Below, one piece after another: positions 1,851-31,400 of a stretch of DNA of 64,000 nucleotides. Position numbers and translations under genes: made by a program. Below the pieces are notes generated by a model that saw nothing but the letters and a program-made list of their open reading frames with translations, did no database searches and was not told where the DNA came from. Each line of letters opens with the position of its first letter. Position 1 is the stretch's first letter. Source of the DNA: Macrostomum lignano (Eukaryota); assembly GCA_002269645.1 (NCBI GenBank), contig NIVC01000275.1, forward strand, positions 310,001 through 374,000. Reading direction: 5' to 3'.

Positions 1851-4800
1851 ATGTTCCTGTGGAAGGTCTGCAGTCTCATTCACGAGCGCAAAATTTTAGT
1901 GGAAGAGGAGCGCAGGCTGAACCGAGTCAGCCAGGACCCCATCGAAGCTGCCGCCTTCGTGAAGGAGCACCGGCGCAGGACCCGGAACAAGGAGCTGCAG
2001 TATGAGTACAAGGTGAGTAGCGGCTGGTTGTGGAGCTGCAGTATGAGTACAAGGTGAGTAGCGGCTGGTTGTGGAGCTGCAGTATGAGTACAAGGTGAGT
2101 AGCGGCTGGTTGTGGAGCTGCAGTATGAGTACAAGGTGAGTAGCGGCTGGTTGTGGAGCTGCAGTATGAGTACAAGGTGAGTAGCGGCTGGTTGTGGAGC
2201 TGCAGTATGAGTACAAGGTGAGTAGCGGCTGGTTGTGGAGCTGCAGTATGAGTACAAGGTGAGTAGCGGCTGGTTGTGGAGCTGCAGTATGAGTACATGC
2301 ACTGCAGACACGGACATGCACTGCAGACATGGACACGCACTCCAGACACGGACATGCACTGCAGACATGGACATGCACTGCAGACACGGACACGCACTGC
2401 AGACACGGACACGCACTGCAGACATGGACATGCACTGCAGACATGGACATGCACTGCAGACATGGACATGCACTGCAGACACGGACACGCACTGCAGACA
2501 CGGACATGCAGACACGGACATGCAGACATGGACATGCAGACATGGACATGCAGACATGGACATGCAGACACGGACATGCAGACATGGACATGCAGACATG
2601 GACATGCAGACACGGACATGCACTGCAGACATGGACATGCACTGCAGACATGGACATGCACTGCAGACATGGACATGCACTGCAGACATGGACATGCACT
2701 GCAGACATGGACATGCACTGCAGACACGGACACTCACTGCAGACACGGACATGCAGACACGGACATGCAGACATGGACATGCAGACATGTACATGCAGAC
2801 ACGGACATGCAGACATGGACATGCACTGCAGACACGGACATGCAGACATGGACATGCAGACATGGACATGCAGACACGGACATGCACTGCAGACACGGAC
2901 ACGCGCTGCAGACACGGACACGCACTGCAGACACGGACATGCACTGCAGACACGGACATGCAGACACGGACATGCAGACATGGACATGCACTGCAAACAC
3001 GGACATGCAGACACGGACATGCAGACACGGACATGCACTGCAGACGCGGACCTCAGGGTATTATCGCGGGAAGACACTCGTGTCGTAGGGACTCCACAGT
3101 ATGCAGTCAGTCAATGGCTAATTCATTCAAGCTGAGATTCAAGCTTGAAGATTCTCGACGCATTTTTCTCGAAAGTCGCCTTACCAGAGTGAAACGGCTT
3201 GACTTGAGGCGCTGCTCTGTCTCCAAGCGGGAAATTTCTACTTTGATGAAAAATTAATCTCTGCTTGCCTGACAGGGTAGAGAGAACAACTGGCTCCACA
3301 AGCCGCCGGCTCAAAGCATTTATCGATTGGCACCAGGGCTCCCATCATGGCTTGGGTCTGTATCATCGCTCTCTCACGCGTCTTCAGTGGCAGCTGCCAC
3401 AATTGCTTTTTTTCCTGTTTCTGCGCAAAGCTGGCAAGCTGAGTTTTGAGCACAGACTCAGGCAGACTCAGGGCTGCTGCCAATTTTCTGAAGCTGATTC
3501 CATTATTTAGCAAAGCTCCACACAGTCTGAAGAGTTCAATAAGTTCAACGTTGTCTTTAGCCGTATCGGATTTCGCTGGATTAATGAGATTATGAAAAAT
3601 GAGCTTTTCGATCTCAATTGTCCTTTTCAGGCTATCGAGCAAATCTCTGTGGGCGAGAAGCAGTCGGTGAGGAAATCAAAAATGAAATTTAATCGAGAAA
3701 GACTCGTCAATAATTGAAATCCCCAGGGGCCACAAAGCAAACTTCCCAAAGTTTGCCACCTCAGCTCCCCAGGGTCTGCCAGCTCAGCTCCTCAGGGTCT
3801 GCCAGCTCAGCTCCTCAGGGTCTGCCACCTCAGCTCCTCAGGGTCTGCCAGCTCAGCTCCTCAGGGTCTGCCAGCTCAGCTCCTCAGGGTCCGCCACCTC
3901 AGCTCCTCAGGGTCCGCCACCTCAGCTCCTCAGGGCCCGCCACCTCAGCTCCTCAGGGCCCGCCACCTCAGCTCCTCAGGGCCCGCCACCTCAGCTCCTC
4001 AGGGCCCGCAAACACACCTCTATTAAAGCGCCATCCCTGAATCCCCGAATCCACAGGCCAGCATCAGAAGCGAAGGTCAGCACAAGGTTGCTGAGGCCGC
4101 CAAGCTGCCGTGCAATAAAGAGAAAAACCTCAGTGAACGAGTCCTGCCGTGTGAGTGCCGCACCAACAGGTTGCATTCGTAAAGATTAATTGGGATCGGT
4201 GCCCTCATTCATGTCATCTTCCGATCTCCATTCACCAACCGCTCCTCATTCACCGATCTCCCCGACTCCCCATTCACCAACCGCTCCTCATTCACCGATC
4301 TCCCCGACTCCCCATTCACCAACTAAACCTCATTCACCGATCTCCTCGACTCCCCATTCACCAACCGCACCTCATTCACCGATCTCCCCGACTCCCCTTT
4401 CACCAACTAAACCTCATTCACCGATCTCCCCGACTCCCCATTCAACAACTAAACCTCATTCACCGATCTCCCCGACTCCCCTTTCACCAACCGCACCTCA
4501 TTCACCGATCTCCCCGACTCCCCATTCACCAACCGCACCTCATTCACCGATCTCCCCGACTCCCCTTTCACCAACCGCTCCTCATTCACCGATCTCCCCG
4601 ACTCCCCATTCACCAACCGCACCTCATTCACCGATCTCCTCGACTCCCCATTCACCAACCGCACCTCATTCACCGATCTCCTCGACTCCCCATTCACCAA
4701 CCGCACCTCATTCACCGATCTCCCCGACTCCCCTTTCACCAACCGCTCCTCATTCACCGATCTCCCCGACTCCCCATTCACCAACCGCACCTCATTCACC

Positions 4801-7800: not shown

Positions 7801-10800
7801 GTTGTGCTGACGCTTAACTTTCGCTAGAGATGTGACTCAACTTCATCAAGCGACGAAAATGCGCTTCAAACACAACTCAGTGACTCTACAGCGACTCAAG
7901 CACGCCTCAAATACGACTCTACCGCCCAGAGTAGCTATACTGTCAAGCCAGAGTCACTTGCGTCTACCGCCCAGAGTAGTTTTACTGTCAAGCCAGAGTC
8001 ACTTGCGTCGACCGCCCCAGAGTAGCTATACTGTCAAGCTAGAGTCACTTGCGTCGACCGCCCCAGAGTAGCTATACTTTCAAGCCAGAGTCACTTGCGT
8101 CGACCGCCCCAGAGTCGTTTCAGAGTCGCAGACAATAAAACGCTTCAAAGTGACTTTTGGGCGAATCTTTGATGACTTTTTTGGCGGCTTTAAACGTGAA
8201 ATCTCGTCGTTTTAGAGTTTAGTCCCACGTCACTTCTTTCTTATTTTACCTGTACCACCTGCAACGACTCTAAAACGACTCTGGGGCGACACAAGTGACT
8301 CTGAGACGCTTCTTGGCCCAGGTACCGTTTTCATCGGGCTGATGCTAGAATCTCAGAAATTCAGTAGCTCACCCAATCAAGGTGTCAGGTGCAAGTCGCA
8401 ATTAGCTATCTGATGATATTTCGTCTATTGAAAGTGCATGGATTACGGAATGGTAGACTCGCTGAGGGTGCTCAGAGTGTCTGCAGCATCAGCAGCACCC
8501 TGTGAGCAGTAGGACTCGACGCGGATGATGTGGCCTACCGCCTGGAGTCTCCGACGACGAGGCAGATCCTGGGGCAGGTTCTTGACTTGGCCCTGTTAAA
8601 AACCTTCTTACAACCTGGATCATCGCCTGAAACAACGTTGCCCTCTGTCCGACAGAAGATGCAAGGCAGCCAAGACGAAATCCTTGATCCATCCCAGGTT
8701 AATTAATCACTGTCAAACCGTCCAGCTGACTTTACACGTCGGGCTTCATTTATCAAATATGATTTTTAATCTTTTTGTTTGTCAGAGCTGTCAATGAAGT
8801 ACAAGCTGCTCATTAAGTTTGCTAGATCGTTGGTTCCGTGTTCTTGAATTTAAAATTATCACCTGATTTCCGCGCCACCTTCAGCCGAGCGAGCCAGGCC
8901 CTACCTGCTGACGCAGGACAGCGCGTCCAGCACGGACTTCATCAATGCTGTCTATGTTGATGTGAGTAAATTGTAGGGCTCGGTGGCAGCTCCCTAAATT
9001 TCTAGACATACCCCGTTAAATTATACGAATAGCCCAGTGTTCATACTCTGAAATGCTCTATGAGCATTGTGCCCACTAAAAGTATATTATCTAAAATACC
9101 ACTGGCAGGGGCATAGTCGGACCAATCAGTACATTGTGACCCAGTGGCCGCTGAAGAATACTGTCTGCGACTTCTGGAAGTTAATCCACGATCACCACGT
9201 GTCAGTGGTGGTGCTGCTGTCCGACTCCAGCCGTGGCGGCACCGGCTCGCAGCCGAGATTCTGGCCAGCTGAGACCGGCTCGGAGCAGGGATTCGGCTCA
9301 GTGTTTGCCATCAAGCAGGACGAGTTGAGAGTCACCGAGAGTGTGCTCTGCAGGATGCACGCCGTTACAAAGGTCAGGAATTCTGATAGAATATTTCTAG
9401 CACTTAAAAAAAAACTTTTATTCCTTCTAGCATATGGATGGCTACTTAGACTAACTTGTTAGTCCTAAATTCGACTAACATCAGAAACGCAATAGTCCTC
9501 ATCCATCTCACGAGAGCGTCAATAAAGATTCGTCAGCTAACAGACCTGATCTTGGCTGCTGTGTACACGAGTATCGGGCGGGGTAGGAAAACTGCGGCTG
9601 GGGTGGGTGCCGAGTGTATAAGCATTAATCGATAAACTTCACCCACCCCACTCCCCGCTGGGGTTAACGTAAGTCGCTTAGCAGACAGATCTAATTAAGG
9701 GGGGTTGCGGACGTGGGGATAGGAAAATTGGGGTGTTGGGGGTTGGGGTCCTTTGCCGGAAAATCGATAAGACCTACTCCCCACTCGATATGGTAGCGCA
9801 GTTAAAAATATTACTTTTATTAATATACACTACATGTGAGAATTATGCTCGTAGATTGATCTTATAGCTCGTAAGCGATAAAAAAGCCACTATCTCTAAC
9901 CAAAAACAATGTCTCTTTGAAGGACAAATTATTTTCCTACGAATTAGCTATCAAGGTCGGCTGGTCCAACAGTTCAGTTTCTATGAAATATCGGTGGCCT
10001 GTACAATCTCTCTCGATGCGGGGAGCGTGAGTGTGCCCTTAGTTCCACGAAATCAACTTCCCAATTCATCACCAGGTCCAGTGTTTGGGCCTGGAGAAGT
10101 GGAGGTTAGAGAGAGAGAGGGCGGTCGGGCTCAAACCTGTCTTTAATCCCTCCAGCTTCCCCATCTAACAGGCGGGCGGCACGCCAGCCTGTCAAAGGAG
10201 GATCTCGGGGTGCAAGAGTGGACTTTATGGCGGCCTGGCAGGCTGGAGGGCAAAAGGGGAAAGGTGCTGAGCTGGAAAGTGAGAGCATAGAGAGGGAGAG
10301 AGAGCAGAGAATTGAGGGTAAGAAGGCGCTGCCATGGTCTACAACCACCCTGCAGACCAAACTGAAGGGGATTTTTTCAAAAAAGCCCAACCCATGAAAA
10401 GCCTGATGAATTGTTTCCCAAGAGCAGCGGCCGCCCTGCATCCCGCGCGATATTGGGCCTCGACACGCAGATTGACTTGCACTGCACTGATAGGGACGAG
10501 CCAACCCGACTGCAAGGGAAGCCGGCTCGGAGATGTTGGGAATAAAGTAGCATTATTAAGTGGAAGAGGAGTTGAAATTTACCCCCCTCTGCAGCTCAGA
10601 GCAGACGTCTCTCTTCAGCCAGCTTAGCAGCGTTCCAGCAATCGGGGTGGTTGGAAATATGTTCCATGAAAACGTCTTTGCTGAGAACTTCAATAATATA
10701 ATTGCACTGGGCCACCCGGCCGTCAATCCGGCTCCCATGACTTGGGCCTATCTGCCTATGCCAGTGTTTGCTTATCTCCTCACTTCAACCGGCCCACCCC

Positions 10801-12974
10801 AGCTTCATTCCTGAGTATTTGGGGCTCAGCGCGTCACAGAGTGGCTTATATGGTTAACCTGCTCCCCTTGGCGACAATCGCTTCTCTTCCCCGACGGTTC
10901 TCGCAGCCCCGGACGGAATGCTGTCTGGGGCTTCTGTACTCTTCTTCTCTCAAGCCTCACACGGCTTCATTTCACACAGAGCTGCCTGCCTCCATCCTGC
11001 ATTTCCTAGCACGGTTTGTTGCATATCTGGTACACAATTATTGCCAGCAGCATCGCAATTCTGCTCATCCAAAATACCACTCAGTCGGAAATTCTGACAG
11101 CTACAATTTTGCACAGCAGTAATTTCTTTCTGTTATAATTTTCACTCTGTCACTATGTCACTCACGTAAAGGTCAGATACTAGATAACTACATAATGTCA
11201 CTTAAATCATAGTCACTCGATCACAATGTCACTCGATCACAATGTCACTCGATCACAATGTCACTCGATCACAATATCACTCGATCACAATGTCCCTCGA
11301 TCACAATTTCACTCAAACACAATGTCACTCGATCACAATGTCACTCGATCACAATATCACTCGATCACAATGTCCCTCGATCACAATTTCACTCAAACAC
11401 AATGTCACTCGATCACAATGTCACTCGATCACAATGTCCCTCGATCACAATGTCACTCGATCACAATGTCCCTCGATCACAATTTCACTCAAACACAATG
11501 TCACTCGATTACAATGTCACTCGATCACAATGTCACTCGATCACAATGTCACTCGATCACAATGTCCCTCGATCACAATGTCACTCGATCACAATGTCCC
11601 TCGATCACAATTTCACTCAAACACAATGTCACTCGATTACAATGTCACTCGATCACAATGTCACTCGATCACAATGTCACTCGATCACAATGTCCCTCGA
11701 TCACAATGTCACTCGATCACAATGTCCCTCGATCACAATTTCACTCAAACACAATGTCACTCGATTACAATGTCACTCGATCACAATGTCACTCGATCAC
11801 AATGTCACTCGATCACAATGTCACTCGATCACAATGTCACTCGATCACAATGTCACTCGATCACAATGTCACTCGATCACAATGTCCCTCGATCCCAATG
11901 TCACTCGATCACAATTTCACTCAAACACAATGTCACTCGGTCGGCATTGTTACTCTTAATCTGAACCTCGCAACTCCAACAGATCGGCAGCGGGGGCCCC
12001 TCTGGTTTCTCCCAGGACGTCCGTCACGTGGCCTTCCTCTGCTTGGCCTCGCCCTGGCCAACCTCCAGCCGAAGTCGCGGCAGTCACGGCCTCCTCGAGC
12101 TCGCCTGTCTGGCCGAGTCAACCAATCAGAATCTGGAGGAGACCCCGGGTTCGAGTCCTCTACTAGTCGTTAGCAGGTTAGTTTGATTTATCAACGCAAC
12201 GATAATTTCATCACTAGGAAGATTTTGTCCCTAAGTAAATTTGTTCCCGCCATTGCGCAGCGACGGAGTGACCAAGTGCGGAGTCTTCTGCGTTCTGCAC
12301 ATGACCATGGACAAGATGCGCTACGAGGGCGAGGTGGACATCTTCCGGGCAGTCGAAAAGGTGAAGCGCAATCGGCCGCAGCTGGTTGGCAGCCAGGTGA
12401 GTTTTGGTTTCCGAGATTGGGCACCATCTGCCCAATTTATTACTCTCTGATCGTAGTGCAGTATGAAAATTGTGGCCTTTCATGGGGTGTGCTAATGATG
12501 AAGCCTTCCGCGGGACAACCATGGCCAGCAGAGAAGTTGCTTCTGGCGCCTTCGATTTTCGCTAAAAACTCCTTTATTAGCGCGTCTGAAAGTGACTGAC
12601 CTCCTCTGATAATAGCTCTTTCTGCTGCTTCCTGGGCGCTGGTTTTTGGGCTTCAAGCGTCCAAATTCATTCGCCACTGTTCACTCGCATTGCAGCAGGA
12701 GTATGAGCAGTGCTACTCCCTGGCGGAGCTGCTAGTCGAGTATTTCTTCTCTGGCCGGGTGTCCATCCAGGACAGTCAGAGCCTGCGGTTTCAGGACCTC
12801 GACCGAGTGCCTCCCGTCACCGGCCGGCCGGCCGCAATCGCGGATTTTCGATTTCCAACGTCGCAACCCGACGCCGGCGGGATGGGGCGCCGTACCCTGG
12901 ACGCTCTGCTGCTGCCCTGCGCCAGGCGGCGCCGGCGGGAGAGGCAGCTGCGATTGGCCGCCGCGATAGTGTGA
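1851..12974 (+). CDS. Ptp36E: Tandem-domain protein tyrosine (pseudo)phosphatase, Ptp36E-like, ~695 aa, 12 coding exons
   Basis: GT-AG exons with consistent phases: 1851-2012, 4057-4150, 5066-5154, 5243-5377, 5474-5590, 5965-6113, 7270-7661, 8885-8961, 9109-9372, 11983-12176, 12261-12396, 12696-12974 (2088 nt). D1 motifs: NKEKNLSERVLPY, YMNASWIDGY, FIAAQGP, DFWRMVW, IIVHCSDGAGRTGTY. D2 motifs: CAGGHRAENRWKSRD, DFINAVYVDG, YIVTQWP, LLVVSSDGVTKCG, EVDIFRAVEKVKRNRPQLV. No signal peptide or TM segment is visible. The Ptp36E assignment is from recalled motif similarity, and the start ATG is tentative. Confidence 0.88.
1991..2297 (+). repeat. 41-bp minisatellite containing the exon-1 3' end and 5' splice donor (7 full copies + partial)
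   Basis: Unit GGAGCTGCAGTATGAGTACAAG|GTGAGTAGCGGCTGGTTGT at 1991, 2032, 2073, 2114, 2155, 2196, 2237, partial at 2278. Confidence 0.95.
2298..3046. repeat. Mixed 14/19-bp minisatellite (CATGCAGACAYGGA / CATGCACTGCAGACAYGGA) in PTP intron 1
   Basis: Directly visible; it generates the repeat ORFs spanning 1880-3257. Confidence 0.95.
3238..3646 (-). other. Antisense exon-like ORF nested in PTP intron 1, weak death-fold resemblance
   Basis: Strong acceptor (TTTTGATTTCCTCACCGACTGCTTCTCGCCCACAG, AG at 3648-3647) opens a 135-codon non-repetitive frame containing GISFRKLAAALSLPESVL...EKKQLWQL...AMMGAL. Confidence 0.35.
3755..4009. repeat. 23-bp minisatellite (GCCASCTCAGCTCCTCAGGGYCY) in PTP intron 1
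   Basis: About 11 direct copies. Confidence 0.93.
4215..5060. repeat. 42-bp minisatellite in PTP intron 2, decaying into the acceptor of exon 3
   Basis: Unit CCCCATTCACCAACCGCACCTCATTCACCGATCTCCCCGACT; it gives 14-aa periodic ORFs. Confidence 0.95.
5606..5942. repeat. 12-bp minisatellite (TAGATCAGTGYA) filling PTP intron 5
   Basis: About 28 direct copies between the donor at 5591 and the acceptor at 5964. Confidence 0.95.
6209..6457. repeat. 20-bp minisatellite (GTGGCGCCCCAGATRCCAAA) in PTP intron 6
   Basis: About 12 direct copies. Confidence 0.93.
7011..7178. repeat. 21-23-bp minisatellite (GGCGCCCCTAGTACCTGAACTT) in PTP intron 6
   Basis: About 8 direct copies. Confidence 0.92.
7926..8120. 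repeat. 45/46-bp tandem repeat in PTP intron 7
   Basis: Unit CCAGAGTAGCTATACTGTCAAGCCAGAGTCACTTGCGTCKACCGC, about 4 copies. Confidence 0.9.
11212..11938. repeat. 16-bp minisatellite (TCACTCGATCACAATG) in PTP intron 9
   Basis: About 45 copies ending ~45 nt before the exon-10 acceptor. Confidence 0.95.
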
Positions 12975-15030
12975 TGTGACGTCATCACTATTATGTGAGA
13001 GCAGTAAAATGTTGGCATTTTGCTCAATGTACTGCTGCTTTGAATTATTCAGTAGTATACAGCGAAAAATTGCCCGATTGCCACTTTATACTGCTGGTAT
13101 AACAATGATAACTCTTAGTTCCTACATTGAGTTTAAGCGAATTGCAAATAAGCATATGCCAGCCATCGTGAATAAAGATCCGAAGATAAACTGACTGCCT
13201 AGAAATTATTTTATTGTTTTTTATAAGCGCACAAAGTATCTATGATAAGCATGCACCTCTGTGAATGATTTTCTGAATGAATGAGATTTTGCATTCTTAG
13301 AGTTTTTTTCCTCTCAGTCTCCACTCTGTGTTCAAAGCCATCGTATCCAGGTCTCGTCTTATTTAGAGTTTCGAAAATATTTTCAGATTTCATGTAAACC
13401 ATCCGTTACAAAAGTATTTTTGGAACAAATCCTCGACCTTCAATTTTAATTTTCCTTTTGAAAAAAATTGTTAAATATATCAAATAAAATTTTGAAAACC
13501 TTACACGGTGTAAAAGTAAAATATCCGGAGATTTAAATTTTATACCAGACGTTTTATTACCAGAAATCAACTGAATTAATTATCATCTATACAGCAATCT
13601 GTTTTTAGCATTAAAAAGGGTACTGAGAAACTGGTGGCAACGGAAGTGCAATTCTATTGTATTAAAAGACTCATAGTCGCACATGTATAAACATATCCTA
13701 GTACATGCATGTATGGCTGTAGTCCTTGTGTTCTTGAGCAAGGCACTACAAGTGAAATTTCTGATATTCAGCAGAAGTGACCAATTTATTTGTCCTTTGT
13801 AGAAAGAATCTTCACTCTGATAATTAAAGGGTATACAGTGTTGTTTATGGGTCCGGTTAAAAGTTTGATAGAGCTGACCTAGACAATTACAAGTAACTTA
13901 TAATAAACAGCGTGTACTTTAGCAGAGTATTATTAGTTGATGCTACATGTGGCGCCCGATTTTCTACATGCGGAGTGCATCTTACAACGATTAAGTGAGT
14001 TAGTGCAGTAAAATTCAGTCGGTGATCCGATGCCTACTGGCGATCCGCCGCAGCATTTATGATATCCTTATTGCTCATGAAAGCGAAGCAGTGTGTCCCC
14101 AGAAGAAAAGCGGGAAAAATACGAAATAATAGGACCGTTCGTAAAAGCGTTTTAGCTTCCGAGAAACGTTCCCGTCAATTCAAAATATCCAAAATGCAAG
14201 AAACCGCGCGGCACGAGCGTACGTGCATATATTTAATTTTTTGTCCCCAGTCGTAGCTACTGCTTGATTGGTGGCAATATTTAGTTACTTACTTTTTACT
14301 TGAAGGTAAACAAGCCACGAGTAGTCCTACTTTTGTGTAATTAAATCTACGGAAACAATTGTTCTTTGTTAATTGCCCATTCGATTCTTAATCTTGTGCT
14401 TAATTTTAAAATTCTTAATTTTAATGTCATCACAAATTCTTGGAATACTTTATTTATTTGATTTAAAGACAAATCTTTAAAAGCATATTTTATTAAGTCA
14501 TATAAAGACCTTAATAGTTGAAATTAAGAGTTTACATAAATTCTGATATTTTCAGTGGGTCAGATTATTGTTTTCTTGGCTTTGATTAATTTCATTCTAT
14601 TAAATAAGGCCATTTTACCAATATTAATAACTATACAAGGTGTAAGCTGAACTCCAAGGACTATACTAAGCTCTGCAAAGTGAAATAAAAAACAAATTTA
14701 TAATTAGCACAAAGTATTTTACCTATATTTTTGGCTTTAATGTTCACAAAAAAGTTTAAAAATATATCTATGCTTCACTTTGAAAATCTTTTTTATGCTT
14801 GTAGCTATTTATTCTAACAAATTCTTAGGAGTTTAAATTTTGGCATTATCTTTCGCCTCAGAAATTTTAATTTAGCAATAGCATTTAAACATTTTAATTT
14901 TTTATTTACTTCCATATTTCAGTTTTTAAACTCTTGTAGTTTTGAATTGTTGATTCTTATTTTTAGCTGAATTTTTGGCTGATAGTCCTATCAAATGAGA
15001 ATCAAATTTGCAGCAAATTAGACACAGAAA

Positions 15031-17972
15031 ATGCTTGTCACTGAAAGCACAGCTGAAGTGCTGCATGCAGACCTGTCCAGGTGGTCGGGCATCGACCCAC
15101 CAGAGATTCCACTGTCTCCGATTGACTCCGTGATGCCGCCCTGTTACATCACCGCCATCTACGTGTTCAAGAATGCCAATGGGTTGGCAGACTTCATGCC
15201 GTTCGACTTGCTGTCCGAGGGCTTGAAGCTGGCCATGGTCGACTTCCCGGATCTCAACTACCGGCTGAAGCGAAACTGCACCGGTGACTGCGTACTGGTG
15301 ACCGAGAACTGCGGGGTCCGGCTGGTCACCGCCAACGCCGACTTCTCGGCTGCCGACCTCGAGGCCATCAATTTCGACCCAGTCAGACTGCCGGCCAGCC
15401 TGCTGGATGGCAGCCCCGCTGACTGCGGACAGTTCGTGTGCAAGGTGCTGCTATGGGGGAGATGGGATTGGGGGTGGGAAAGATGGGATTGGGGGTGGGG
15501 AAGATGGGATTGAGGGTGGGGAAGATGGAATTGAGGGTGGGGAAGATGGGGTTTTGGGTGGGGGAGATGGGATTGAGGGTGGGGGAGATGGAATTGAGGG
15601 TTGGGGTGAGATGGGCTCGGTTAGGGTCATGGTAGCGGAGATGGGATAATTGAGTTGGGATCGTAATGTAAAATCGCACGCACCCGCAGTTCAAGCTGAC
15701 CCGCCTGTCCGACAACTCGGTGGCGCTAGGCGTCCTGCTGCACCATAACGTGATGGACGGAGACGGCGCATTCGGCTTTATCAACAGGTGCGCTGGAGAA
15801 GTTACTCCGTGCGAAGCTAACAAGCACACGAACCACTGAAGGAGCAGATGGTACGCTTGCAAGTTATCAAAATCCAACTTGTAACTTGTGAAATCTATCA
15901 AAAACGCCAGGTGGGCCGGCATCTGCCGGGAGCTGCGACAGCGGGGAGGTCGGCCCGCCGAGCCGGAGCTGCAGCGGCCGCCGGTGTCCCGCGACCGGTC
16001 GGTGCTGAAGCCCGACGGCGTCCCGTCAAGTGTCGACCACCAAGGTCGCGAGTACGCCTACGTGGAGCCGCAGCCGGCGCCCGAGCCCGAGGTCAAGCCG
16101 ACGCTGCCAGTAACCCAGGCGCCGCAATTCACGGCCCGTCTGTTCCACCTGAGCGCGGATTTTCTGGCCCGACTGAAGAACAGTGTTAATAGCGAGCCGG
16201 GCGAGCAGGTCAGGGAGAGGGGCTCGGTGCGAGATCCCAGCAGATAGCGGGACTTTTATTGTTTGGACGGCAGAAGGTCGTCGCTGGAGGGATTTAGTAG
16301 GCAAGTTGGTTGTCGTGGACGCCAAGTTTGTTGTCAGGGACGCCAAGTTGGTTGTCAGGGACGCCAAAGTTTGTTGTCGGGGACGCCAAGTTTGTTGTCA
16401 GGGACGCCAAGTTTGTTGTCAGGGACGCCAAGTTGGTTGTCAGGGACGCCAAGTTGGTTGTCAGGGACGCCAAGTTGGTTGTCAGGGACGCCAAGTTGGT
16501 TGTCAGGGACGCCAAATTAGTGGTCAGGGACGCCAAGTTGGTTGTCAGGGACGCCAAGTTGGTTGTCAGGGACGCCAAATAGGTTGTCAGGGACGCCAAG
16601 TTTGTTGTCAGGGACACCAAGCTGGTTATCAGGGTTGCTAAGTTGGTTGTCAGGGTCGTCCGTCAAATTTGAGGTCAGACACTCAAGCTTTGCCTTTCAT
16701 GTCTTTTACATGAAAGGACAATACTGTTGTGACAATACTTTTAGCAAACGCTTTCACAACATTTTCGCTTTACACTCCTTTCTTGTTACTCGCCTAGTGT
16801 CGAGCGTTCTTTATTATTTGTTATTCATAAGTGATCTAGCCACGTCGGGTTTAAGTTGGCACTCCTTACGTTAGCGAGGCACAAATTCTTATTCTGACTT
16901 CTTATTTCAGTTTTTATCTTATCAAGACGCCGGCCGGTCTGCCAGAAACGGTAGAGGGCTGCATGAGACCCAATTTTTAATTTGTTTAATCTTCTCCAGC
17001 TCAACTAGTACGTGGGGTCATTGCTAGCAATGTGTGTGACAGTTTCTGAGTAGGAAGGGAAAAAATTCTTTTCAACTTAATTTTATGCTACTCGTTAGTA
17101 AGCGATGTCTGTTCTGTTTAAAGAGGTTCAACAGCCTTAACTAATATCTCACAGAGATTATGAATTTGAGCGTCAAGTTTGGTGTGTCAGTGGTTTCAAG
17201 TTGGTGTGTCAGTGGTTTCAAGTTGGGGTGTCAGTGGTTTCAAGTTGGGGTGTCAGTGGCTTCAAGTTGTGTATCAGTTGTTGCTATTGAAGTGCTTGTT
17301 AGAAAGTCCTTATGGGGTGTCAGGATGGCGCCAGTGCAGTGGGTGTCAGGATGTCGCCAGTTCCTACCAGTGTGAATTACCAGCAGCTCCTGCCCGCCCC
17401 TGCAGCCCGCGGTCCAGTGCACCACCAACGACTGCTTGGTGGCGCTGCTGTGGCGCTGCGTCACGAAGGCAAAGCGGCTGCCCGCCGACGCGCCAACGAA
17501 ATTCGCCATGGCCTGCAACGCCCGCCAGCGCCTGTCGCTGCCGGCCGGCTACGCTGGCAACGCGAATTTCTACATCGCCGACCAGCTGACGGCTGGCGAG
17601 GTGGCCGACGGACTCAGCCTGGCCAGCCTGGCTCGCCGGGTTCGCGCCGCGGTGTCGCGCGGCACGGCGCCGGACTACCTGCGCTCCATCCTGCGCTGGC
17701 TGGCCGAGCGGCCCGACCGGTCGCGCATCCTGCCGGGCTTCCGGATGTTCGCCAACGACCTGGCCTTCACCTCCTGGGTGCACTTCCCCGTCTACGAGGC
17801 CGACTTCGGCTGGGGCCGGCCGTTGCGATTCGCCGTGCCGAGCGCCGGATTCGACGGCCTCGCCGTCCTGATGCCGAGGTTCGACGGCGACGGCTACGAT
17901 GTGCTGACCGGCTGCGAGGTGGACGCGATGGACCGGCTGGCGGCCATGCCGGAGCTGGCGAGACCGACTTAG
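15031..17972 (+). CDS. BAHD-family (HXXXD/DFGWG, Transferase-type) acyl-CoA acyltransferase, ~458 aa, 4 exons
   Basis: Exons 15031-15444, 15690-15787, 15911-16208, 17406-17972 join in frame through GT-AG introns (phases 0, 2, 0). Motifs: N-terminal LSPIDSVMPPCY, catalytic HHNVMDG, TTNDCLVALLW, GYAGNA, C-terminal TSWVHFPVYEADFGWGRP. Confidence 0.9.
15458..15612. repeat. ~20-bp G-rich minisatellite (GAGATGGGATTGAGGGTGGG) in acyltransferase intron 1
   Basis: About 7 degenerate copies right after the donor. Confidence 0.85.
16303..16660. repeat. 21-bp minisatellite (GTTGGTTGTCAGGGACGCCAA) in acyltransferase intron 3
   Basis: About 16 direct copies. Confidence 0.93.
17177..17270. repeat. 22-bp tandem repeat (GTTGGKGTGTCAGTGGTTTCAA) in acyltransferase intron 3
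   Basis: About 4 copies. Confidence 0.8.
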
Positions 17973-18689
17973 GGCCTTCGGATCTGTGCCCTGTCTACCG
18001 AATATGCTTGGGTGGAGTTTCAGGTTTTACCCACAGAGATTTTTACTGCAATAGTATAGTGCTCAATGAATTGACAGCATAATTGACAGGGACCTAATTA
18101 TTGACTAATTATCGCAGAGTGAACCGTCTCGCTTGCGGAATCGCGCAATTATCTCCTAATTAAAGTCCCCCCCAATAGAGCCAGAAAATTTTCACCAATT
18201 ACCCAGAAGTTTCGTCAGTTTTTATGGATTTTATTGCGTCTGATTTTGCTGATTTTCAGTCCAATCAAAAGAATTAAAAATTTTCTAAACAAATAAATCA
18301 GAACTCTCGCTCTAATTCCAAGTAAATATACTCCCCATTTCTCCCTTGCAAATTTATTTCTTTTATTTTAGGCTTCAACAATGACAGGGTGCTAACTACT
18401 TAACAAAATCCAAGCTTAAATTTCGCTAGAAGCAATCAAATCAATAATTTTACTAAATTTATAACACAGACACGGTACGGCGCGGCACAGACACTGGCAA
18501 AGCTACAGCTAATTAATCCACAATGGCTTGCTGTGATGGGGTTTGTGACCAAAGGAACTGCTATGGGGTTTGTACTGTCTGCATTCATGAGACGGACGAG
18601 AAGAAAGGAGCGAGACGCTGGAGAGACGTGAGACTGATATGATGGGACTGAGAAGGCTGGCAGGTCAGAGTGGAGAAAGACAGAAAAGA

Positions 18690-19600
18690 TGGGAGACAGG
18701 TGAGATGAGAGGAGAGAGACGGGCATGCTAGGAGAGACAGGTGACAGGTGAGAAGATGAGGGGAGAGAGACGGGCATGTTAGGAGAGACAGGTGACAGGT
18801 GAGAAGATGAGGGGAGAGAGACGGACATGCTCGGAGAGACAGGTGACAGGTGAGAAGATGAGGGGAGAGAGACGGACATGCTCGGAGAGACAGGTGACAG
18901 GTGAGAAGATGAGGGGAGAGAGACGGACATGCTCGGAGAGACAGGTGACAGGTGAGAAGATGAGGGGAGAGAGACGGACATGCTCGGAGAGACAGGTGAC
19001 AGGTGAGAAGATGAGGGGAGAGAGACGGACATGCTAGGAGAGACAGGTGACAGGTGAGAAGATGAGGGGGGAGAGACGGACATGCTAGGAGAGACAGGTG
19101 ACAGGTGAGAAGATGAGGGGAGAGAGACGGACATGCTAGGAGAGACAGGTGACAGGTGAGAAGATGAGGGGGGAGAGACGGACATGCTAGGAGAGACAGG
19201 TGACAGGTGAGAAGATGAGGGGAGAGAGACGGACATGCTAGGAGAGACAGGTGACAGGTGAGAAGATGAGGGGGGAGAGACGGACATGCTAGGAGAGACA
19301 GGTGACAGGTGAGAAGATGAGGGGGGAGAGACGGACATGCTAGGAGAGACAGGTGACAGGTGAGAAGATGAGGGGAGAGAGACGGACATGCTAGGAGAGA
19401 GAGACAGGTGACAGGTGAGAAGATGAGGGGAGAGAGACGGACATGCTAGGAGAGACAGGTGACAGGTGAGAAGATGAGGGGGGAGAGACGGACATGCTAG
19501 GAGAGAGAGACAGGTGACAGGTGAGAAGATGAGGGGAGAGAGACGGACATGCTAGGAGAGACAGGTGACAGGTGAGAAGATGAGGGGAGAGAGACTGTCA
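18690..19600. repeat. 51-bp purine-rich minisatellite
   Basis: Unit GGAGAGACAGGTGACAGGTGAGAAGATGAGGGGAGAGAGACGGACATGCTM, about 17 copies. Confidence 0.95.
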
Positions 19601-20292
19601 TGCAAGGAGAGACACATGACATGCAAGGAGGGGCCCCACAACATCAGCAAATTACAAGACACGCAACAACAGTCTAACAAACAAATTAGGTCAAAAGCTC
19701 AGTTCGCGACCCTACAGTAAGTTTTAACAGAGGCAAACAGTACAAATCAAGGTAGAAGGGGTGGGTGATAACGCAGGTGCATTGAATGCGGCTAATATGG
19801 GTGTGACAGGTGTACCTTGTATGGATTATCAGTGAGACACCGCTAAAACTGATGAATGACACAAACTACACACGCAGTCATAAATAAATATATGGATATA
19901 TTGATAGCCAGATCGATGTGTACAGAGGAGCATGCGCTTATAAAAATAAATTAATATTCATAATCGATTGCAAATAGTCAAATAAGTTGGTTTAAATTTA
20001 ATGATAAAATCTGGTTTGGGGTGGCTGAGACTGGTACAGACAATCTACGCATGTAATGTATCGCAATTCTGAACAAGGAACAAAGTAAAAGACAAAGATT
20101 TACACACAGAGAGAACAGAGTCTGGCAGAATCTATGCAGGCTTAAAAGGTGCATGAAATATTTGGTTGAGGACTGTAATTGTAAAGAAATTTGCTTTTAA
20201 AACACAAATCCGACCTTAACCAAACTTAACCAAAGCAATCCTTCGGACCTCTACTGATGATCACCTGGTTGGGCTGTCCATGAGGTCAGCTG

Positions 20293-21270: not shown

Positions 21271-22991
21271 CTAGAAGGACGCCGCCGCTCCGCTGCCTGT
21301 CATAGCGGCGGCGGTGGCGGCGGCTGCGGCGCCAACCTGCCTGAAGATATGGCCGGCCGGCTTGACAAAGTGGAAGTCCTGCGCCCGGCAGTGGGCGCAC
21401 GCGGCCGCCTGGCTGAAGTGGGAGAAGGCGCTGGGCAGCTCGGCGGAGTCCTTCACGGCTGGCCGGCGGCAGTGGGCGCACATCAGGCGGTCCGGGCAGC
21501 ACGGGCAGCAGGCGAACACATCAAACAGGTAGACACCGCCAATCAGCAGGTGGGAGCCATCCCAGACTCGCTGGCAGAACCGGCAGCGGCTGTGCAGGGT
21601 GGACACACAGGCGCAGTGCATGCAGACAGCGTGCAGGTAGCCTTTGCCGCAGGCTGGGCTGTCCTTGTTGTGGCGCAGCGGGCTGAGGAAGAAGGTGCCG
21701 TCCACCAGGGGGAAGTGGTCGTAGACGGGCATCTGGCGGGAGCAGAGGACGCAGGCGACGGTTGGGCAGCGGCAGGCGGTCAGGGTGGTGAGCACCAGAG
21801 ACTTGAGCTCGTCATTCTCTGTTGAGCTGTCGTCCTCGGTGACAATGTGGAACTTGTTCTGCTTCCAGCGGGGCAGCGCCTTCAGACTGTCGTAGTTGTC
21901 GCTGCGCCTCTGGAAGATGTTGCCCCGGCTGTGGCCGCCGCCGCTGGCCGAAGCCGCGGCCGCGGCAGTGTAGACAGGCGAGGAGAAGGGCAGCGGGGCG
22001 CCGGGCGCGTTGCCGTCGGTCTGCGGCGGGCTCAGGCTGAAGTTGCCACTCTGGTTGGACGAGTTGCTGAGGTGCCGGAACCGTCTGCTGATCATGTCGG
22101 TCGGGCTGTAGGAGGAGCCACCGGCCACCAGGCCGTTGGTCTGGCGCTTGCGGACCCCGGCGGCGATGAGCTGCGGCGGCGACTGCCGGGTGTCCCGGCT
22201 GACCTGGCCGCGGCCGCAGGGGCACCGGATCTTTCCCATGGTGCCAGGGGCGCGCAGTTTGGAGGCGTTGAGCAGGACGCGCTCCCAGCGGCCAAAACAG
22301 TCAGCATGGGCCCACAGGCCTGGTTGGGAGAGATCATGTTTGTGACACACGACAAGTAAACGGCGGGAGTAACTATATCCCCTCGGCCTCGTCATATTAT
22401 TAGTCTTAAAGATACGTGGAAATTTTCAAGTCAATACTAATTGCAAGGACTACTCAATTAATCCTTGAGTTGTCCTTGGTCTGTTGAAATGGGTGGCATT
22501 AAGAAACACAAAATACAATTAGAAACGTTTCAATTTTAGCACAGGGGATCTGTACTGTGTTTGCGCAATTCACTAAGTACATGCATGCTTGTAAGTTTCT
22601 GGCTTTTTAGCGTAATATAATCCTTGCCAAAGGGAGCCAGAGAATGCTTCACAGTTTTGAACAATTCATCACTTCGGTTTTCTCTACTTTCACCTTTGTC
22701 AATCGATTTTTTGGTGCTAAGTTGCTTTGCACTTTAAATAAACAGCCGAGCTGCTTGCTGATTGACTGACTCACTGTGACTGCAGTGCGCGTTGGAGCAG
22801 ACCAGCTTGACAGCGTCGCCTGGCTCGTCGGGATCAATCATGAGATCGCCGGGGTCCAGGCAGCCGTTCAGCGCGTGGCCCGGCTTGCTGGGGTCCGGCT
22901 CGGCGTGCAGGCAGCAGGGAACACCCGGCGACACGGCGATGCCGTTCTCCACGGGTGACTCGGAAGCTTTGCGCACTCGACTGCTGGACAT
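21271..22991 (-). CDS. HECA: Headcase protein homolog, ~421 aa, 2 coding exons
   Basis: Exons 22991-22775 and 22319-21271 (phase-1 GT-AG intron). N-terminal DAVKLVCSNAHCSHSLWAHADCFGRWE and CPCGRGQVSRD. C-terminal headcase domain with NKFHIVTEDD, CVLCSRQMPVYDHFPLVDGTFFLSP, LHAVCMHC, WDGSHLLIGGVYLFDVFACCPCC, FSHFSQAAACAHC..DFHFVKP. Confidence 0.92.
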
Positions 22992-25407: not shown

Positions 25408-28400
25408 TCAAACGTAGGTATTGTTAGTCCGCTCGGCGGCATTCATCTGGGCCAGCTGCTTCAGCGGCAGCAGTAGAAAGGTGTCCATGTCGCGGTTGTG
25501 CTTGCCCAGCGAGTTCACCCGGTAGTGCGCGACCAGCTCCTCCAGGCTGGGGAACGAGGTCGGACTGACGTAGTCGAAGCCGCACCGGCCGGTCTGCTGC
25601 TGGCCGGCGCCCAGCTCCATGAAGATCTTGCAGAAGCGGACACCGCACGGACTGCGGACGGACAGCACTAGGCTCTCCTCGCCACCTGAGCGAGACGCGT
25701 GAATCAGGAAGGTGCCGATTGGCGCATTGTCCAGATGGCGCAGCAGCGGGTCGGCCTTGGTGATCTGCCTGTCCAGCCAGTCGGCGGGGTCCCACGGCGC
25801 CGCGGAGGTCGAACCCACCGGGTCCTCGGCCAGCGACAGTCGCTCGAAGCTGTCGGCGCAGCCGGGGAAGTAGCCGCCGAGATTGGCGGCGTCCTCGGCG
25901 TCCACCGTCTCGCGCAGCACGCCGTACAGGGTCATCAGGATGGCCTTGAGGCGGATGCGCTTCTCCTGGATTGCGCGAACGTCTCCGCGCATCGTGCGCA
26001 CCTCGGCCTGCATCACCTGGCTATCGTGCCGGATCCGCTGCGCCTCCTTCTCGGCCGCTTCCTGCCTGGACCGGTACATCTGCATGCGGCTCACCTGCGG
26101 AATGGGCGGCGGGGGTGGCTTTATGGGTTGCCAGCGGTATGCTGCTTGCGGGATCAGGTAGAAACAGGTGAGGAGAAGGGAGCATAGGGAGAATCCAGAT
26201 GGGAGCATAGGGAGAATCCAGATGGGATCATAGGGAGAATCCAGATGGGAGCATAGGGAGAATCCAGATGGGGATCGAGGGAACCCATATGGGGATCAGG
26301 GGAGAATCAATATGGGGATTAAGGGAAAATTCCGAGAATACCGATACTCACGATTCCACTCCAATAAACTTATCACTCACCTGCGAGTCCCGATTGGTCT
26401 TCATGAGCTGTTCCAGAGCACTGCGCCGCTCAATGAGTCTGTCCATCTTGGCGATATTGTTGGTAAGGGTGAGCACGACCTGCGAGTAGCACTTAGCGCC
26501 GCGCTCCGCCTCCAGCTGCTGATCCTTTAGCGTTCCCATAGTAACAATGTTCTCGTCCATCTTTGTAAACACGTCGGAGATTTCGCGACCCATTTCTTGG
26601 TAGAGGGTCAGCAGCTCCTGCCTCATCTGGGCGGGAAAACCAATTCGAGATGGGATCAATACGACTCATACGAGCCTCATGCGCCCCATCACTCGATTCT
26701 TCCCATCTCCACAATCTTCCCCCTTTCCGTCACTCCAATTCTTCCCCTTTCTCGTCACTCCAATTCTACCCCTTTCTCGTCATTCCAATTCTTCCCATTC
26801 CCGTTACTTCAATTCTTCCTCTTTCCTGTCACCCCCAATTCTTCTCCTTTCTCGTCACTCCAATTCTTCCCCATTCTCAAAAAAATAATCTTCCCCCTTT
26901 CTCGTCACTCCCAATTCTTCCTCTTTATCGTCACTCCCATTTTTCCCCTTTCTCGACCCTCCAATTCTTCCCCTTTCCTGTCACTCAAATTCTTCCCTTT
27001 TCTCGTCACCCCAATGCTTCCTCTTTCTCGTCACCCCAATTCTTCCCCATTCTCGTCACTCCTAATTCTTCCCCTTTCTCGTCACCACAATTCTTCCCTT
27101 TCCTGTCACTCAAATTCTTCCCTTTTCTCGTCACCTTAATTCTTCCCCTTTCTCGTAAATCGAATTCTCCCCTTTCCTGTCACTCAAATTCTTCCCCCTT
27201 TCTCGTCCCTACCAAATCTCTCTTTTCTCGTCACTCTAATTTTTCCCCTTTCTCTTAAATGCAATTCTTCCGCATTCTCTGACTCTAATTCTTCCCCACA
27301 CCCTGCAACCCAAATTCCTCCCCTACGAGTGAACAGCAAAACACAGATCCCCAGCTCACTTCTTCGCTGTTCCCCTTGGAGGCAGATTCAGCTGGGCAGC
27401 CTGCAAACTTGCTAATGGGATAGAGGAGCAACACGTCCAGGTTGTTATTGTACTCGCGCAGCGAATTGTAGGTGTAGTGATTGATGACCTGGGCTACCGT
27501 GTAGAACTCGGTGGCCCGCTCGGAGAAGCCGTACGTGACCCGGTCGCCGGTCTTGTAGCGCGGATAGATTCTAATCAGCTTGTTCTCGCCGTCCTTCTTC
27601 AGAGTCAGCGTGTAGCCGCCGCTCATGTTGGCGGCGTTGCGCACTAGGAATGAGCCGTCCGGCCGGTTGGCCAGCACGGCTTGAACCTCCGACTTGGAGA
27701 TGTCGCCCCAGTACCACGGTTGCTCGGGCAGGGAGATGTGATCCACCTGCGGGATGGCGCAGCGGTTGCTTTTAGTTGTCAAGCCGGTTTCACTTATGAG
27801 CTAGTTGCTAGGCAGTTCTGGGGATTGGATATAATTGGGGTTGGGGTTTGAGATCGGGAATCGGGATAGTGATGGGATTTGAGATTGGGAATCGGGACAG
27901 CGATGGGATTTGAGATTGGAAATCGGAACACTGATGGGATTTGAGATTGGGAATCGGGACACTGATGGGATTTGAGATTGGGAATCGGGACACTGATGGG
28001 ATTTGAGATTGGGAATCGGGACAGCGATGGGATTTGAGATTGGGAATCGGGACAGTGATGGGATTTGAGATTGGGAATCGGGACAGTGATGGGATTTGAG
28101 ATTGAGAATGTGGATGGGATTTGAGATTGGGAATCTGGATGGGATTTGAGATTGGGAATCATGATGGGATTTGAGATTGGGAATCATGATGGGATTTGAG
28201 ATTGGGAATCTGGACAGTGATGGGATTTGAGATTGAGAATCGGGATGGGATTTGAGATTGGGAATCGGGATGGGATTTAAGATTGAGAATCTGGATGGGA
28301 TTTGAGATTGGGAATCAGGATGGCATTTGAGATTGGAAATCGGGATGGGATTTGAGATTGAGAATCTGGATGGGATTTGAGATTGGGAATCATGATGGGA

Positions 28401-31400
28401 TTTGAGATTGGGAATCTGGATGGGATTTGAGATTGGGAATCATGATGGGATTTGAGATTGGGAATCTGGATGGGATTTGAGATTGGGAATCATGATGGGA
28501 TTTGAGATTGGGAATCAAGATGGGATTTGAGATTGGGAATCTGGATGGGATTTGAGATTGGGAATCTGGATGGGGTTTGAGATCGGGAATCGGGACAGTG
28601 ATGGGATTTGAGATTGGAAATCAGGACACTGATGGGATTTGAGATTGGGAATCGGGACAGCGATGGGATTTGAGATTGGGAATCGGGACAGTGATGGGAT
28701 TTGAGATTGGGAATCGGGACAGTGATGGGATTTGAGATTGAGAATGTGGATGGGATTTGAGATTGGGAATCTGGATGGGATTTGAGATTGGGAATCATGA
28801 TGGGATTTGAGATTGGGAATCATGATGGGATTTGAGATTGGGAATCTGGACAGTGATGGGATTTGAGATTGAGAATCGGGATGGGATTTGAGATTGGGAA
28901 TCGGGATGGGATTTAAGATTGAGAATCTGGATGGGATTTGAGATTGGGAATCAGGATGGCATTTGAGATTGGAAATCGGGATGGGATTTGAGATTGAGAA
29001 TCTGGATGGGATTTGAGATTGGGAATCATGATGGGATTTGAGATTGGGAATCTGGATGGGATTTGAGATTGGGAATCATGATGGGATTTGAGATTGGGAA
29101 TCTGGATGGGATTTGAGATTGGGAATCATGATGGGATTTGAGATTGGGAATCAAGATGGGATTTGAGATTGGGAATCTGGATGGGATTTGAGATTGGGAA
29201 TCTGGATGGGATTTGAGATTGGGAATCTGGATGGGATTTGAGATTGGGAATCTGGATGGGATTTGAGATTGGGAATCTGGATGGGATTTGAGATTGGGAA
29301 TCTGGATGGGATTTGAGATCAGAAATCTGGATGGGATTTGAGATTGGGAATCGGGATGGGATTTGAGATTGGGAATCTGGATGGGATTTGAGATCAGAAA
29401 TCTGGATGGGATTTGAGATTGGAAATCAGGACACTGATGGGATTTGAGATTGGGAATCGGGATGGGATTTGAGATTGGGAATCTGGATGGGATTTGAGAT
29501 TGGGAATCTAGATGGGATTTGAGATTGGGAATCTGGATGGGATTTGAGATTGGGAATCCGGATGGGATTTGAGATTGGGAATCTGGATGGGATTTGAGAT
29601 CAGAAATCTGGATGGGATTTGAGATTGGGAATCGGGATGGGATTTGAGATTGGGAATCTGGATGGGATTTGAGATCAGAAATCTGGATGGGATTTGAGAT
29701 TGGGAATCATGATGGGATTTGAGATTGGGAATCGGGATGGGATTTGAGATTGGGAATCGGGATGGAATTTGAGATTGGGAATTGGGACAGTGATGGGATT
29801 TGAGATTGGGAATCGGGATGGGATTTGAGATTGGGAATCGGGATGGGATTTGAGATTGGGAATCGGGATGGGATTTAAGATTGGGAATCTGGATGGGATT
29901 TGGGATTGGGAATCTAGATGGGATTTGGGATTGGGAATCTGGATGGGATTTGAGATTGGGAATCGGGATGGGATTTGAGATTGGGAATCGGGACAGTGAT
30001 ACGATACGATACAGTAACTGTAGGGTATAGGACCAAGGAAGGCTCACAACCACCCCAGGGAGACAGCAGCCAGACTGAGGAACGAACCTGAGACGGGTCG
30101 TTAAGCACCAGAAATGAAGGCAGCACGCAGCCCCAGCGGCCGTGGGACAGCACCCCCTTGGCAACGTCGTGCAATGGCACAACACAAGGCCGACTGTGCT
30201 CGCCGGCCACCATCCCGGTCACTCGGGACCAGGCCGGACGGAGCAGCAGCTGGCCGAAAACGCGCGACCACGAAATGAAATACTGACGGTCGGCGTTTCG
30301 AACCCGCCTGAAGATCTGCACAAAGTGGCACATGAGGTGCTGCAGAGTAGCCCTATGATGGTCGGGGGCCTCCGACAGCAGACGGCGGAGCTCCACGGCC
30401 TGCTGATGCAGCTGGCTGGCAGGCAGGTCCATGAGGCGGACGAATCTGCGCGGGAGGCGAGTGACAGATTCGCTGGGGTGAGAGGGCGACTCTCTGGGAT
30501 GAGAGGGCGACTCTCTGGGATGAGAGGGCGACTCTCTGGGATGAGAGGGCGACTCTCTGGGATGAGAGGGCGACTCTCTGGGATGAGAGGGCGACTCTCT
30601 AGGGTAAGAGGGCGAATCTCTAGAATGAGAGGGCGACTCTCTGGGATGAGAGGGCGACTCTCTGGGATGAGAGGGCGACTCTCTGGGATGAGAGGGCGAC
30701 TCTCTGGGATGAGAGGGCGACTCGTTGGTATGAGAGGGCGACTCTCTGACAGGTAGGAAGCGATTCTCAGACTTGGAACTCTCTGATGCGCCAATGCCAG
30801 CCTTCAGTCTCACTTGTCGTAGTGCTGGCAGGGCAGCAGTGAGGTCGGCAGCTCCTGCAGCCACAGTTTGAGCAGCTGGGCCGCCAACTTGCCGTCCAGT
30901 TTATTAAACGCGGCCGGCCCAACTCCGCAGCCGAAGTCGGCGCGAAGGGCTTCAACGTCGGCGGCGGTCCGCCTGAAACGGTAGAACTGCAGCAGGTCGC
31001 CTGGATAAGTGAGGCTCTCCCGCTCCACTGTGTAAGTGCACAGCCGGACAATATAGGGCACCAGGTGCGAGGCCGCCTCCGGTGCCATGGAGTCGGGCGC
31101 GTCGGACAGAGCCGGCTGGTCAGAGTGGGCCAGGCTGTCGTACACGTTGGTGGAGTCGGCGTAGTTGTCCAGCTTGCGGCGAAAGCTCTCGTCTGGCAGC
31201 TGCTGCTCGCCTGCGGCTACCTGCTCATCAATGGACGCGCCGAACACGATGGACGGCACCATAGGCGGCACGGTGGGTCGGCAGGATTCGTCACCTTCAG
31301 CACCGGTTGCCCCCCACCGGTGAAACCTGGCGCAGTGCCGATGCGCGACCCGGCCGCAGACGGTGCACTGCAGGCCCTGCTGGTAGATGCCCAGCAGCCG

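Follow-up and report, generated by a model that had tools for sequence, protein, structure and literature searches.

BAHD acyltransferases stand behind much of the small-molecule chemistry of plants and fungi, and to our knowledge they do not belong to the standard animal gene set. In one well-studied animal case, the whitefly BtPMaT1, a captured BAHD enzyme can reportedly neutralise plant toxins. Here we analyse a spliced BAHD gene of the flatworm Macrostomum lignano, located on the plus strand at 15031-17972 of a stretch of 64,000 nucleotides, hereafter the window, which is 100% identical to the 426-kb contig NIVC01000275.1 of assembly GCA_002269645.1. The data make it fairly probable that this is a functional nuclear gene, encoding a cytosolic enzyme of ~50 kDa, which reached the worm lineage long ago through horizontal transfer, its donor being fungus-like.

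Among described systems, the plant HCTs (5FAL, 4KE4, 5KJT) and HCT-like BAHDs such as rosmarinate synthase and the agmatine and spermidine coumaroyltransferases match the worm protein over its full length (E ~1e-39), sharing a fold with a template modelling (TM) score of ~0.8, the catalytic His of the HXXXD motif, the DFGWG motif and the Thr and Trp of the TSW motif. In contrast to plant HCTs, the worm protein has Pro380 in place of the arginine handle and a longer, proline-rich crossover loop, and its acyl-CoA donor and acceptor probably differ as well, since we know of no phenylpropanoid pathway in the host animal. The closest sequences known are "transferases" of early-diverging fungi, i.e. 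Basidiobolus meristosporus (ORX94943.1), B. ranarum, Rhizophagus, Endogone and Hyaloraphidium, which share up to 39% identity (249 bits) with the worm protein and have "PGF" at the position of the arginine handle, while differing in gene structure and in the Basidiobolus and Endogone proteins carrying DFGYG instead of DFGWG. Far more distant is the fungal trichothecene 3-O-acetyltransferase TRI101 (2RKV, 3B2S), a BAHD-type detoxifying acetyltransferase with the same superfamily fold (TM ~0.77), which is matched over the C-terminal half only (E ~5e-11) with 16-19% identity.

The whitefly genes are the animal precedent. BtPMaT1 and BtPMaT2 are reported to be BAHD phenolic-glucoside malonyltransferases acquired from plants (Xia et al. 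2021, as cited in PMC9599486), they are accompanied by further whitefly BAHD genes, and the proteins are 40-58% identical to plant proteins (PMC9599486). As in the flatworm, a BAHD gene is found in an animal genome, is adapted to its host and is read as a horizontal transfer, which in the whitefly is taken to help the insect deal with foreign small molecules. Unlike the worm gene, BtPMaT1 and BtPMaT2 belong to the malonyltransferase clade, have a clearly plant donor and reside in an insect that feeds on plants, so that their ecological benefit is plain, whereas the worm gene is more divergent and of fungal-type appearance. The capture of a BAHD gene by an animal is thus a known kind of event, of which the flatworm would be a new case in another phylum and probably from another donor kingdom.

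Gene structure and the encoded BAHD enzyme

Reading and splicing of the region 14500-18500 of the window yields a coding sequence of 1377 nt (458 codons and a stop) distributed over four plus-strand exons. Exon 1 (15031-15444; 414 nt) starts with the ATG and ends in phase 0 after K138 at the donor AAG/gtgctg; it contributes the N-terminal portion of BAHD domain 1 and is intact in all three copies of the locus in the assembly. Exon 2 (15690-15787; 98 nt) begins with F139, stops two bases into the codon of R171 and holds the catalytic HXXXD motif. Domain 1 is completed by exon 3 (15911-16208; 298 nt), which also supplies the proline-rich crossover loop (about residues 182-243), whereas BAHD domain 2, including the TSW motif (T392, W394) and DFGWG, comes from exon 4 (17406-17972; 567 nt with the TAG stop counted). 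Downstream of the stop, AATAAA at 18292-18297 is a candidate poly(A) signal. All three introns have GT...AG ends, their phases being 0, 2 and 0. Intron 1 (15445-15689; 245 nt) consists mostly of a 21-bp minisatellite (15454-15615; 7.6 copies), intron 2 (15788-15910; 123 nt) shows 1-2 mismatches between copies, and intron 3 (16209-17405; 1197 nt) contains 21-bp and 22-bp minisatellites (16302-16655 and 17173-17282), the repeats being detected by Tandem Repeats Finder. Within the 64-kb window the gene is single-copy, as judged by tblastn.

The preliminary description of this locus, made from the sequence without database searches, had proposed a complete open reading frame (ORF) of ~458 residues over four phase-consistent exons encoding a BAHD enzyme with the catalytic HHNVMDG and an exact C-terminal DFGWG, and in these points our analysis agrees with it throughout. 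HHNVMDG comprises residues 156-162 (window 15741-15761), providing His157 and Asp161 of the HXXXD motif, and DFGWG comprises residues 403-407 (17802-17816) near the C-terminus. The Pfam family PF02458 is matched with E 9.6e-47 (160 bits compared to a cut-off of 22.7) over residues 18-448, corresponding to profile positions 18-427 of 434, i.e. full-length, and plant HCT sequences of the PDB match residues 32-443 in a phmmer search with E 8e-40 and 25-28% identity. A 12-sequence alignment shows no variation at H157, D161, D403, F404 and G405 and very little at G407. An AlphaFold2 model calculated with the 12-sequence alignment has a mean predicted local distance difference test (pLDDT) score of 87 and a predicted TM score of 0.88, the crossover loop (~182-243) being weaker with pLDDT values of 54-77. 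A Foldseek comparison of this model with the PDB returned plant HCTs at the top (5FAL, 5KJT, 4KEC; E ~1e-36, TM 0.79-0.86) and aligned at least 50 BAHD structures with E <1e-25 and TM 0.65-0.86, so that the predicted structure fits two CAT-like domains connected by a crossover loop. The PDB matches rank alike when searched by sequence, with plant HCTs ahead of other BAHDs including TRI101. All sequence and structure-prediction criteria tested place the protein in the BAHD family, and more closely in its HCT-like branch.

The arginine handle of HCTs (AtHCT Arg356, SbHCT Arg371) anchors the carboxylate of shikimate (PMC6203249). In the phmmer alignment the handle arginine of SbHCT (ALVRGAH in 4KE4; also 5FAL) is aligned to Pro380 of the worm protein (RILPGFR), and the resulting PGF is common to the worm protein and its closest fungal and metagenomic relatives. 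The assignment as a true shikimate HCT was rejected on the basis of Pro380 occupying the handle position. Since the handle is replaced, the acceptor is predicted to be other than shikimate or quinate.

By analogy to the family, catalysis would proceed via a ternary complex: the channel between the CAT-like domains would receive the acyl-CoA on one face and the acceptor, an alcohol or amine, on the other, His157 as the general base would deprotonate the acceptor, attack of the acceptor on the thioester carbonyl would release CoA-SH, and the DFGWG motif (403-407) would stabilise the fold. As to the biological role, we tentatively suggest a flatworm having domesticated a fungal-type BAHD as an enzyme of specialised metabolism or detoxification, which might acylate small molecules of dietary diatoms or microbes, polyamines or lipids; we regard this as a possibility to be entertained rather than as a probable assignment. 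The availability of transgenesis, RNA interference and good genome resources for M. lignano makes the function directly testable.

Nearest relatives and origin of the gene

An exhaustive HMMER search over 1.84 billion representatives retrieved 2860 proteins at the threshold of E <=1e-3, 42 of these at E <=1e-30. Taxon labels are at hand for ~22 of the best matches, most of the 2860 being unlabelled. The labelled matches comprise fungi (Basidiobolus meristosporus, B. ranarum, Endogone, Rhizophagus, Dentiscutata, Syncephalis, Hyaloraphidium, Trizodia and Martensiomyces), the oomycetes Pythium and Phytophthora, the amoebozoan Phalansterium and the plants Riccia, Turnera, Avena and Miscanthus; no animal or holozoan is found among these ~22. 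The best non-self match is the Basidiobolus protein mentioned above with 39% identity and 249 bits, the third-best is from Pythium with 201 bits, and the best labelled single-domain plant match is from the liverwort Riccia with 158 bits, ~90 bits below Basidiobolus. In a comparison of cluster profiles, the profile of a fungal-side cluster scores the worm protein with 354 bits compared to 321 bits for the profile of the liverwort-containing, plant-side cluster. The preliminary description had introduced BAHD enzymes as a plant family with relatives in fungi; for the worm protein this has to be adjusted, its nearest relatives being found in early-diverging fungi rather than in plants. A first word-index search, a method that is weak for this GC-rich and Ala/Arg/Pro-rich query (4, 5 and 10 matches in three runs), yielded no protein between 26% and 100% identity. 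In the databases searched there is no close relative outside M. lignano at the sequence level, and since identity to anything among the 1.84 billion representatives does not exceed 39%, the gene looks old.

The oomycete relatives occur as fusions, the Phytophthora palmivora protein (P0160) combining acyl-CoA oxidase C-terminal domains with a BAHD domain and the Pythium oligandrum protein (P0012) consisting of two BAHD domains in tandem. A connection with fatty-acyl-CoA metabolism is one possible reading of these fusions, an artefact of the gene models another.

Phylogenetic trees were built by distance methods (neighbour-joining). The tree of 114 full-length matches is star-like and groups the worm protein with four unlabelled sequences at 27% bootstrap, which we treat as a possible case of long-branch attraction. 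Two of these four are intronless BAHD ORFs of the ENA assembly ERZ25072740 (L005, 10001-11299; L006, 3902-5209), both residing on AT-rich (~33% GC), gene-poor, eukaryotic contigs. In the labelled tree of 18 sequences with 1000 bootstrap replicates, Basidiobolus is nearest to the worm protein (distance 1.13). Of the replicates, 74% give the worm protein an immediate sister group composed of fungi alone and 3% one composed of oomycetes alone, while plants enter this group in no more than 9%. Fungi form a clade without the worm sequence in 0.8% of the replicates. Orthology to land-plant HCTs was considered and rejected, the worm protein being placed on the fungal side of both trees with plants in its sister group in no more than 9% of the replicates. 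In neither tree does a node that places the worm protein exceed 25-27% bootstrap; the signal leans fungal and is not decisive.

The exon-intron structures of the relatives were compared with that of the worm gene. The Basidiobolus homologue is intronless, the Rhizophagus homologue has a single intron at a site aligned to worm residue 325, and the Riccia homologue has two; no intron site of Rhizophagus or Riccia coincides with any worm intron, which fits a gain of introns after arrival. Because the closest homologue lacks introns, those of the worm gene were probably gained. The first Riccia intron (L010, 3432/3433), which we take to be the "Q-intron" of plant BAHD genes, is in phase 0 after a Gln that precedes the catalytic His by 17 residues, which in the alignment corresponds to a site following worm K140, whereas worm intron 1 (15444/15445), likewise in phase 0, follows K138 two codons upstream of that position. 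Chance, intron sliding or shared ancestry could each account for this proximity, and we give it little weight because a near-match of this kind has a chance expectation of ~6% by a rough estimate.

These data bear on a donor other than a fungus, candidates being a streptophyte or alga, a stramenopile (an oomycete, or diatoms eaten by the worm) and a bacterium. Such an origin would agree with plant HCTs being the best matches among solved structures, with the exact DFGWG shared with plants where Basidiobolus and Endogone have DFGYG, with the phase-0 intron 1 lying two codons from the Q-intron position of Riccia and with Pythium being the third-best match (201 bits). However, the ranking in the PDB is biased as the solved BAHD structures are from plants and a few fungi, Basidiobolus exceeds the best labelled single-domain plant match by ~90 bits, sister groups including plants or consisting purely of oomycetes are infrequent in the replicates (<=9% and 3%), and the proximity of the introns has the chance expectation given above. 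Two pattern scans of low sensitivity over 185,579 bacterial and archaeal genomes (GTDB) found no relative. Taken together, we judge a non-fungal donor to be quite unlikely.

The main rival is vertical inheritance from an opisthokont or the last eukaryotic ancestor, with loss in nearly all other animals and retention in Macrostomum. The HCT-like branch is present in fungi (chytrid, Zoopagomycota, Mucoromycota, Ascomycota), Amoebozoa, oomycetes and plants, the grouping of the worm protein with fungi is what a vertically inherited animal gene is expected to show, and the protein is highly divergent, with at most 39% identity to anything. Moreover, M. lignano keeps genes that were lost in other flatworms, e.g. 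spermine synthase (PMC12803844). This scenario would, however, need at least a dozen independent losses across Holozoa and Metazoa, the ~22 labelled best matches include no animal or holozoan, and the fungi excluding the worm protein in just 0.8% of the replicates suggests that it tends to nest inside fungi instead of being their sister. On balance we consider vertical descent improbable.

The most parsimonious explanation, if not a proven one, is that the gene was acquired horizontally and then domesticated over a long time, because it appears in a single animal lineage as far as the matches are labelled, has fungal-type nearest relatives, has an intronless closest homologue and shows the codon usage of its host. 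This supports a model according to which the gene would have entered the Macrostomum lineage long ago from a fungus-like donor, the nearest known relatives of which are early-diverging fungi such as Basidiobolus, would then have gained its three spliceosomal introns and adopted host codon usage, and would later have been duplicated together with the surrounding chromosome segment. The preliminary description had proposed an old transfer with gain of introns; the age and the probable intron gain are borne out by the comparisons, the transfer itself is not established by them.

Several points weigh against a transferred, functional gene of fungal type. The lack of animals among the matches applies to the ~22 of 2860 that are named. 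The nodes placing the worm protein reach no more than 25-27% bootstrap, its place near fungi is roughly what vertical opisthokont descent would give too, and the family could be ancient because it is patchily present in four eukaryotic supergroups. The location of intron 1 two codons from the plant Q-intron position is a weak hint against a fungal donor. With regard to function, expression and splicing are inferred from transcript-based annotation, the measure of selective constraint is based on just 12 substitutions between very recent duplicates, and the closest fungal homologues are without a characterised function too.

If a fungus-like donor is correct, the flatworm would join the whitefly as a second animal to have captured a BAHD gene, independently and out of another donor kingdom. 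A capture by a non-herbivorous flatworm would widen the view of gene transfer from eukaryotes to animals and would point to acylated flatworm metabolites. This significance is tempered by the gene being already public under an automatic name, by the transfer not yet being phylogenetically proven and by no substrate being predictable.

Genomic integration and copies of the locus

The gene is embedded among metazoan genes. Upstream of it lies an exon of a protein-tyrosine-phosphatase (9067-9462, plus strand; Pfam Y_phosphatase E 4.3e-16) and downstream a Headcase gene (21271-22395, minus strand; Pfam Headcase E 3e-59), which is followed on the minus strand by an SH2 ORF (25408-26208) and C1/RhoGAP ORFs (29914-31832), together spanning 25408-31832 and representing one gene for a C1-RhoGAP-SH2 protein of 1089 residues in public gene models. 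Of the metazoan neighbours named in the preliminary description, the phosphatase and Headcase are confirmed, while the supposed p85 is this C1-RhoGAP-SH2 gene.

The assembly contains the locus in three copies on contigs of 69 kb, 426 kb (that of the window) and 723 kb; duplications are fewer in the NL10 line of the worm. The order of the BAHD gene on the plus strand followed by Headcase on the minus strand is kept on all three contigs (L001, L002 and L003); the C1-RhoGAP-SH2 gene follows further downstream on the 426-kb and 723-kb contigs, and on the 69-kb contig Headcase lies downstream. The GC content at third codon positions (GC3) of the BAHD coding sequence is 0.858 and thereby close to that of Headcase (0.867) and of the SH2 exon (0.854). 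Introns 1 and 3 are filled with minisatellites of host type (21-22 bp). The GC-rich exon style common to the gene and its neighbours and the minisatellite-filled introns, both features pointed out in the preliminary description, are therefore reproduced by these measurements, as is its conclusion that the gene does not stem from contamination.

A contaminating fungal or plant sequence joined by misassembly, or a decaying pseudogene, might be suspected from BAHD genes being unexpected in animals and from the M. lignano assembly being repeat-rich and redundant (PMC5730564). Against this, three separate long-read contigs share the metazoan neighbours, the codon usage is that of the host, the spliceosomal introns carry host minisatellites, the ORFs are intact with catalytic motifs kept and exons less changed than most flanks and introns, and transcript-derived models exist. 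Because the same metazoan neighbours are found on three contigs of up to 723 kb, GC3 is host-like and the GT-AG introns contain minisatellites, contamination or misassembly is effectively excluded, and an artefact or relic of either kind is highly improbable. The BAHD gene shows domestication in the form of host codon usage, introns and an intact ORF under constraint.

The full ORF and every splice site are intact in all three copies and the catalytic motifs are conserved, the coding sequences differing by 4-12 nucleotides; the few differences are explained by the duplicates being recent. Between the window and L001 there are 8 synonymous and 4 non-synonymous differences. Exons are 0.3-0.9% divergent between copies (99.1-99.7% identical), compared to 0.8-3.2% for most flanks and unique intron sequence, and the pairwise ratio of non-synonymous to synonymous substitution rates (dN/dS) among the three copies is 0.11-0.24, which, considering the small numbers and the recent duplicates, points to purifying selection. 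The introns vary in length with the copy number of their minisatellites, intron 1 comprising 245 nt in the window, 511 nt in L001 and 824 nt in L002, and intron 3 comprising 1197, 2791 and 1653 nt, respectively.

The conceptual product is 100% identical to the UniProt/UniRef entry A0A1I8JM83 of Macrostomum lignano, which carries the automatic name "Transferase" and is returned by the UniRef search proposed in the preliminary description alongside that with PF02458. Its 90% cluster contains M. lignano entries only, including GenBank PAA49264.1, PAA86452.1 and PAA86545.1 (Mlig030323.g4, g3 and g1). The annotation of the assembly holding NIVC01000275.1 was made from RNA-seq-guided transcript assemblies (PMC5730564), and the deposited models agreeing with the splicing described here provide indirect support for expression and for the junctions. 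The gene is thus already public in UniProt and GenBank; searches of the literature on flatworm BAHD genes, Mlig030323 and horizontal transfer in Macrostomum returned nothing relevant and no paper describing it.

Other features of the window

Just downstream of the BAHD gene a 51-bp minisatellite (18703-19621; ~18 copies, 96% identity) gives rise to a spurious repeat ORF of 317 residues on the minus strand. Several further long ORFs, at 11226-12173 (plus strand) and within 1880-3257, consist of tandem repeats only and are not genes; one of them produces spurious Pfam matches, e.g. Integrase_Zn and TEX29, with zero accepted stretches. A long ORF at 59180-61339 (minus strand) encodes a lactate/malate dehydrogenase NAD-binding domain (E 1.5e-27), after which a repeat-rich stretch causes spurious low-complexity Pfam matches. 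An uninterrupted ORF of 319 residues at 46007-46966 (minus strand) encodes a methyltransferase domain of the Methyltransf_22/FkbM type (E 4.7e-14), its GC3 of 0.61 being below that of the neighbouring genes.

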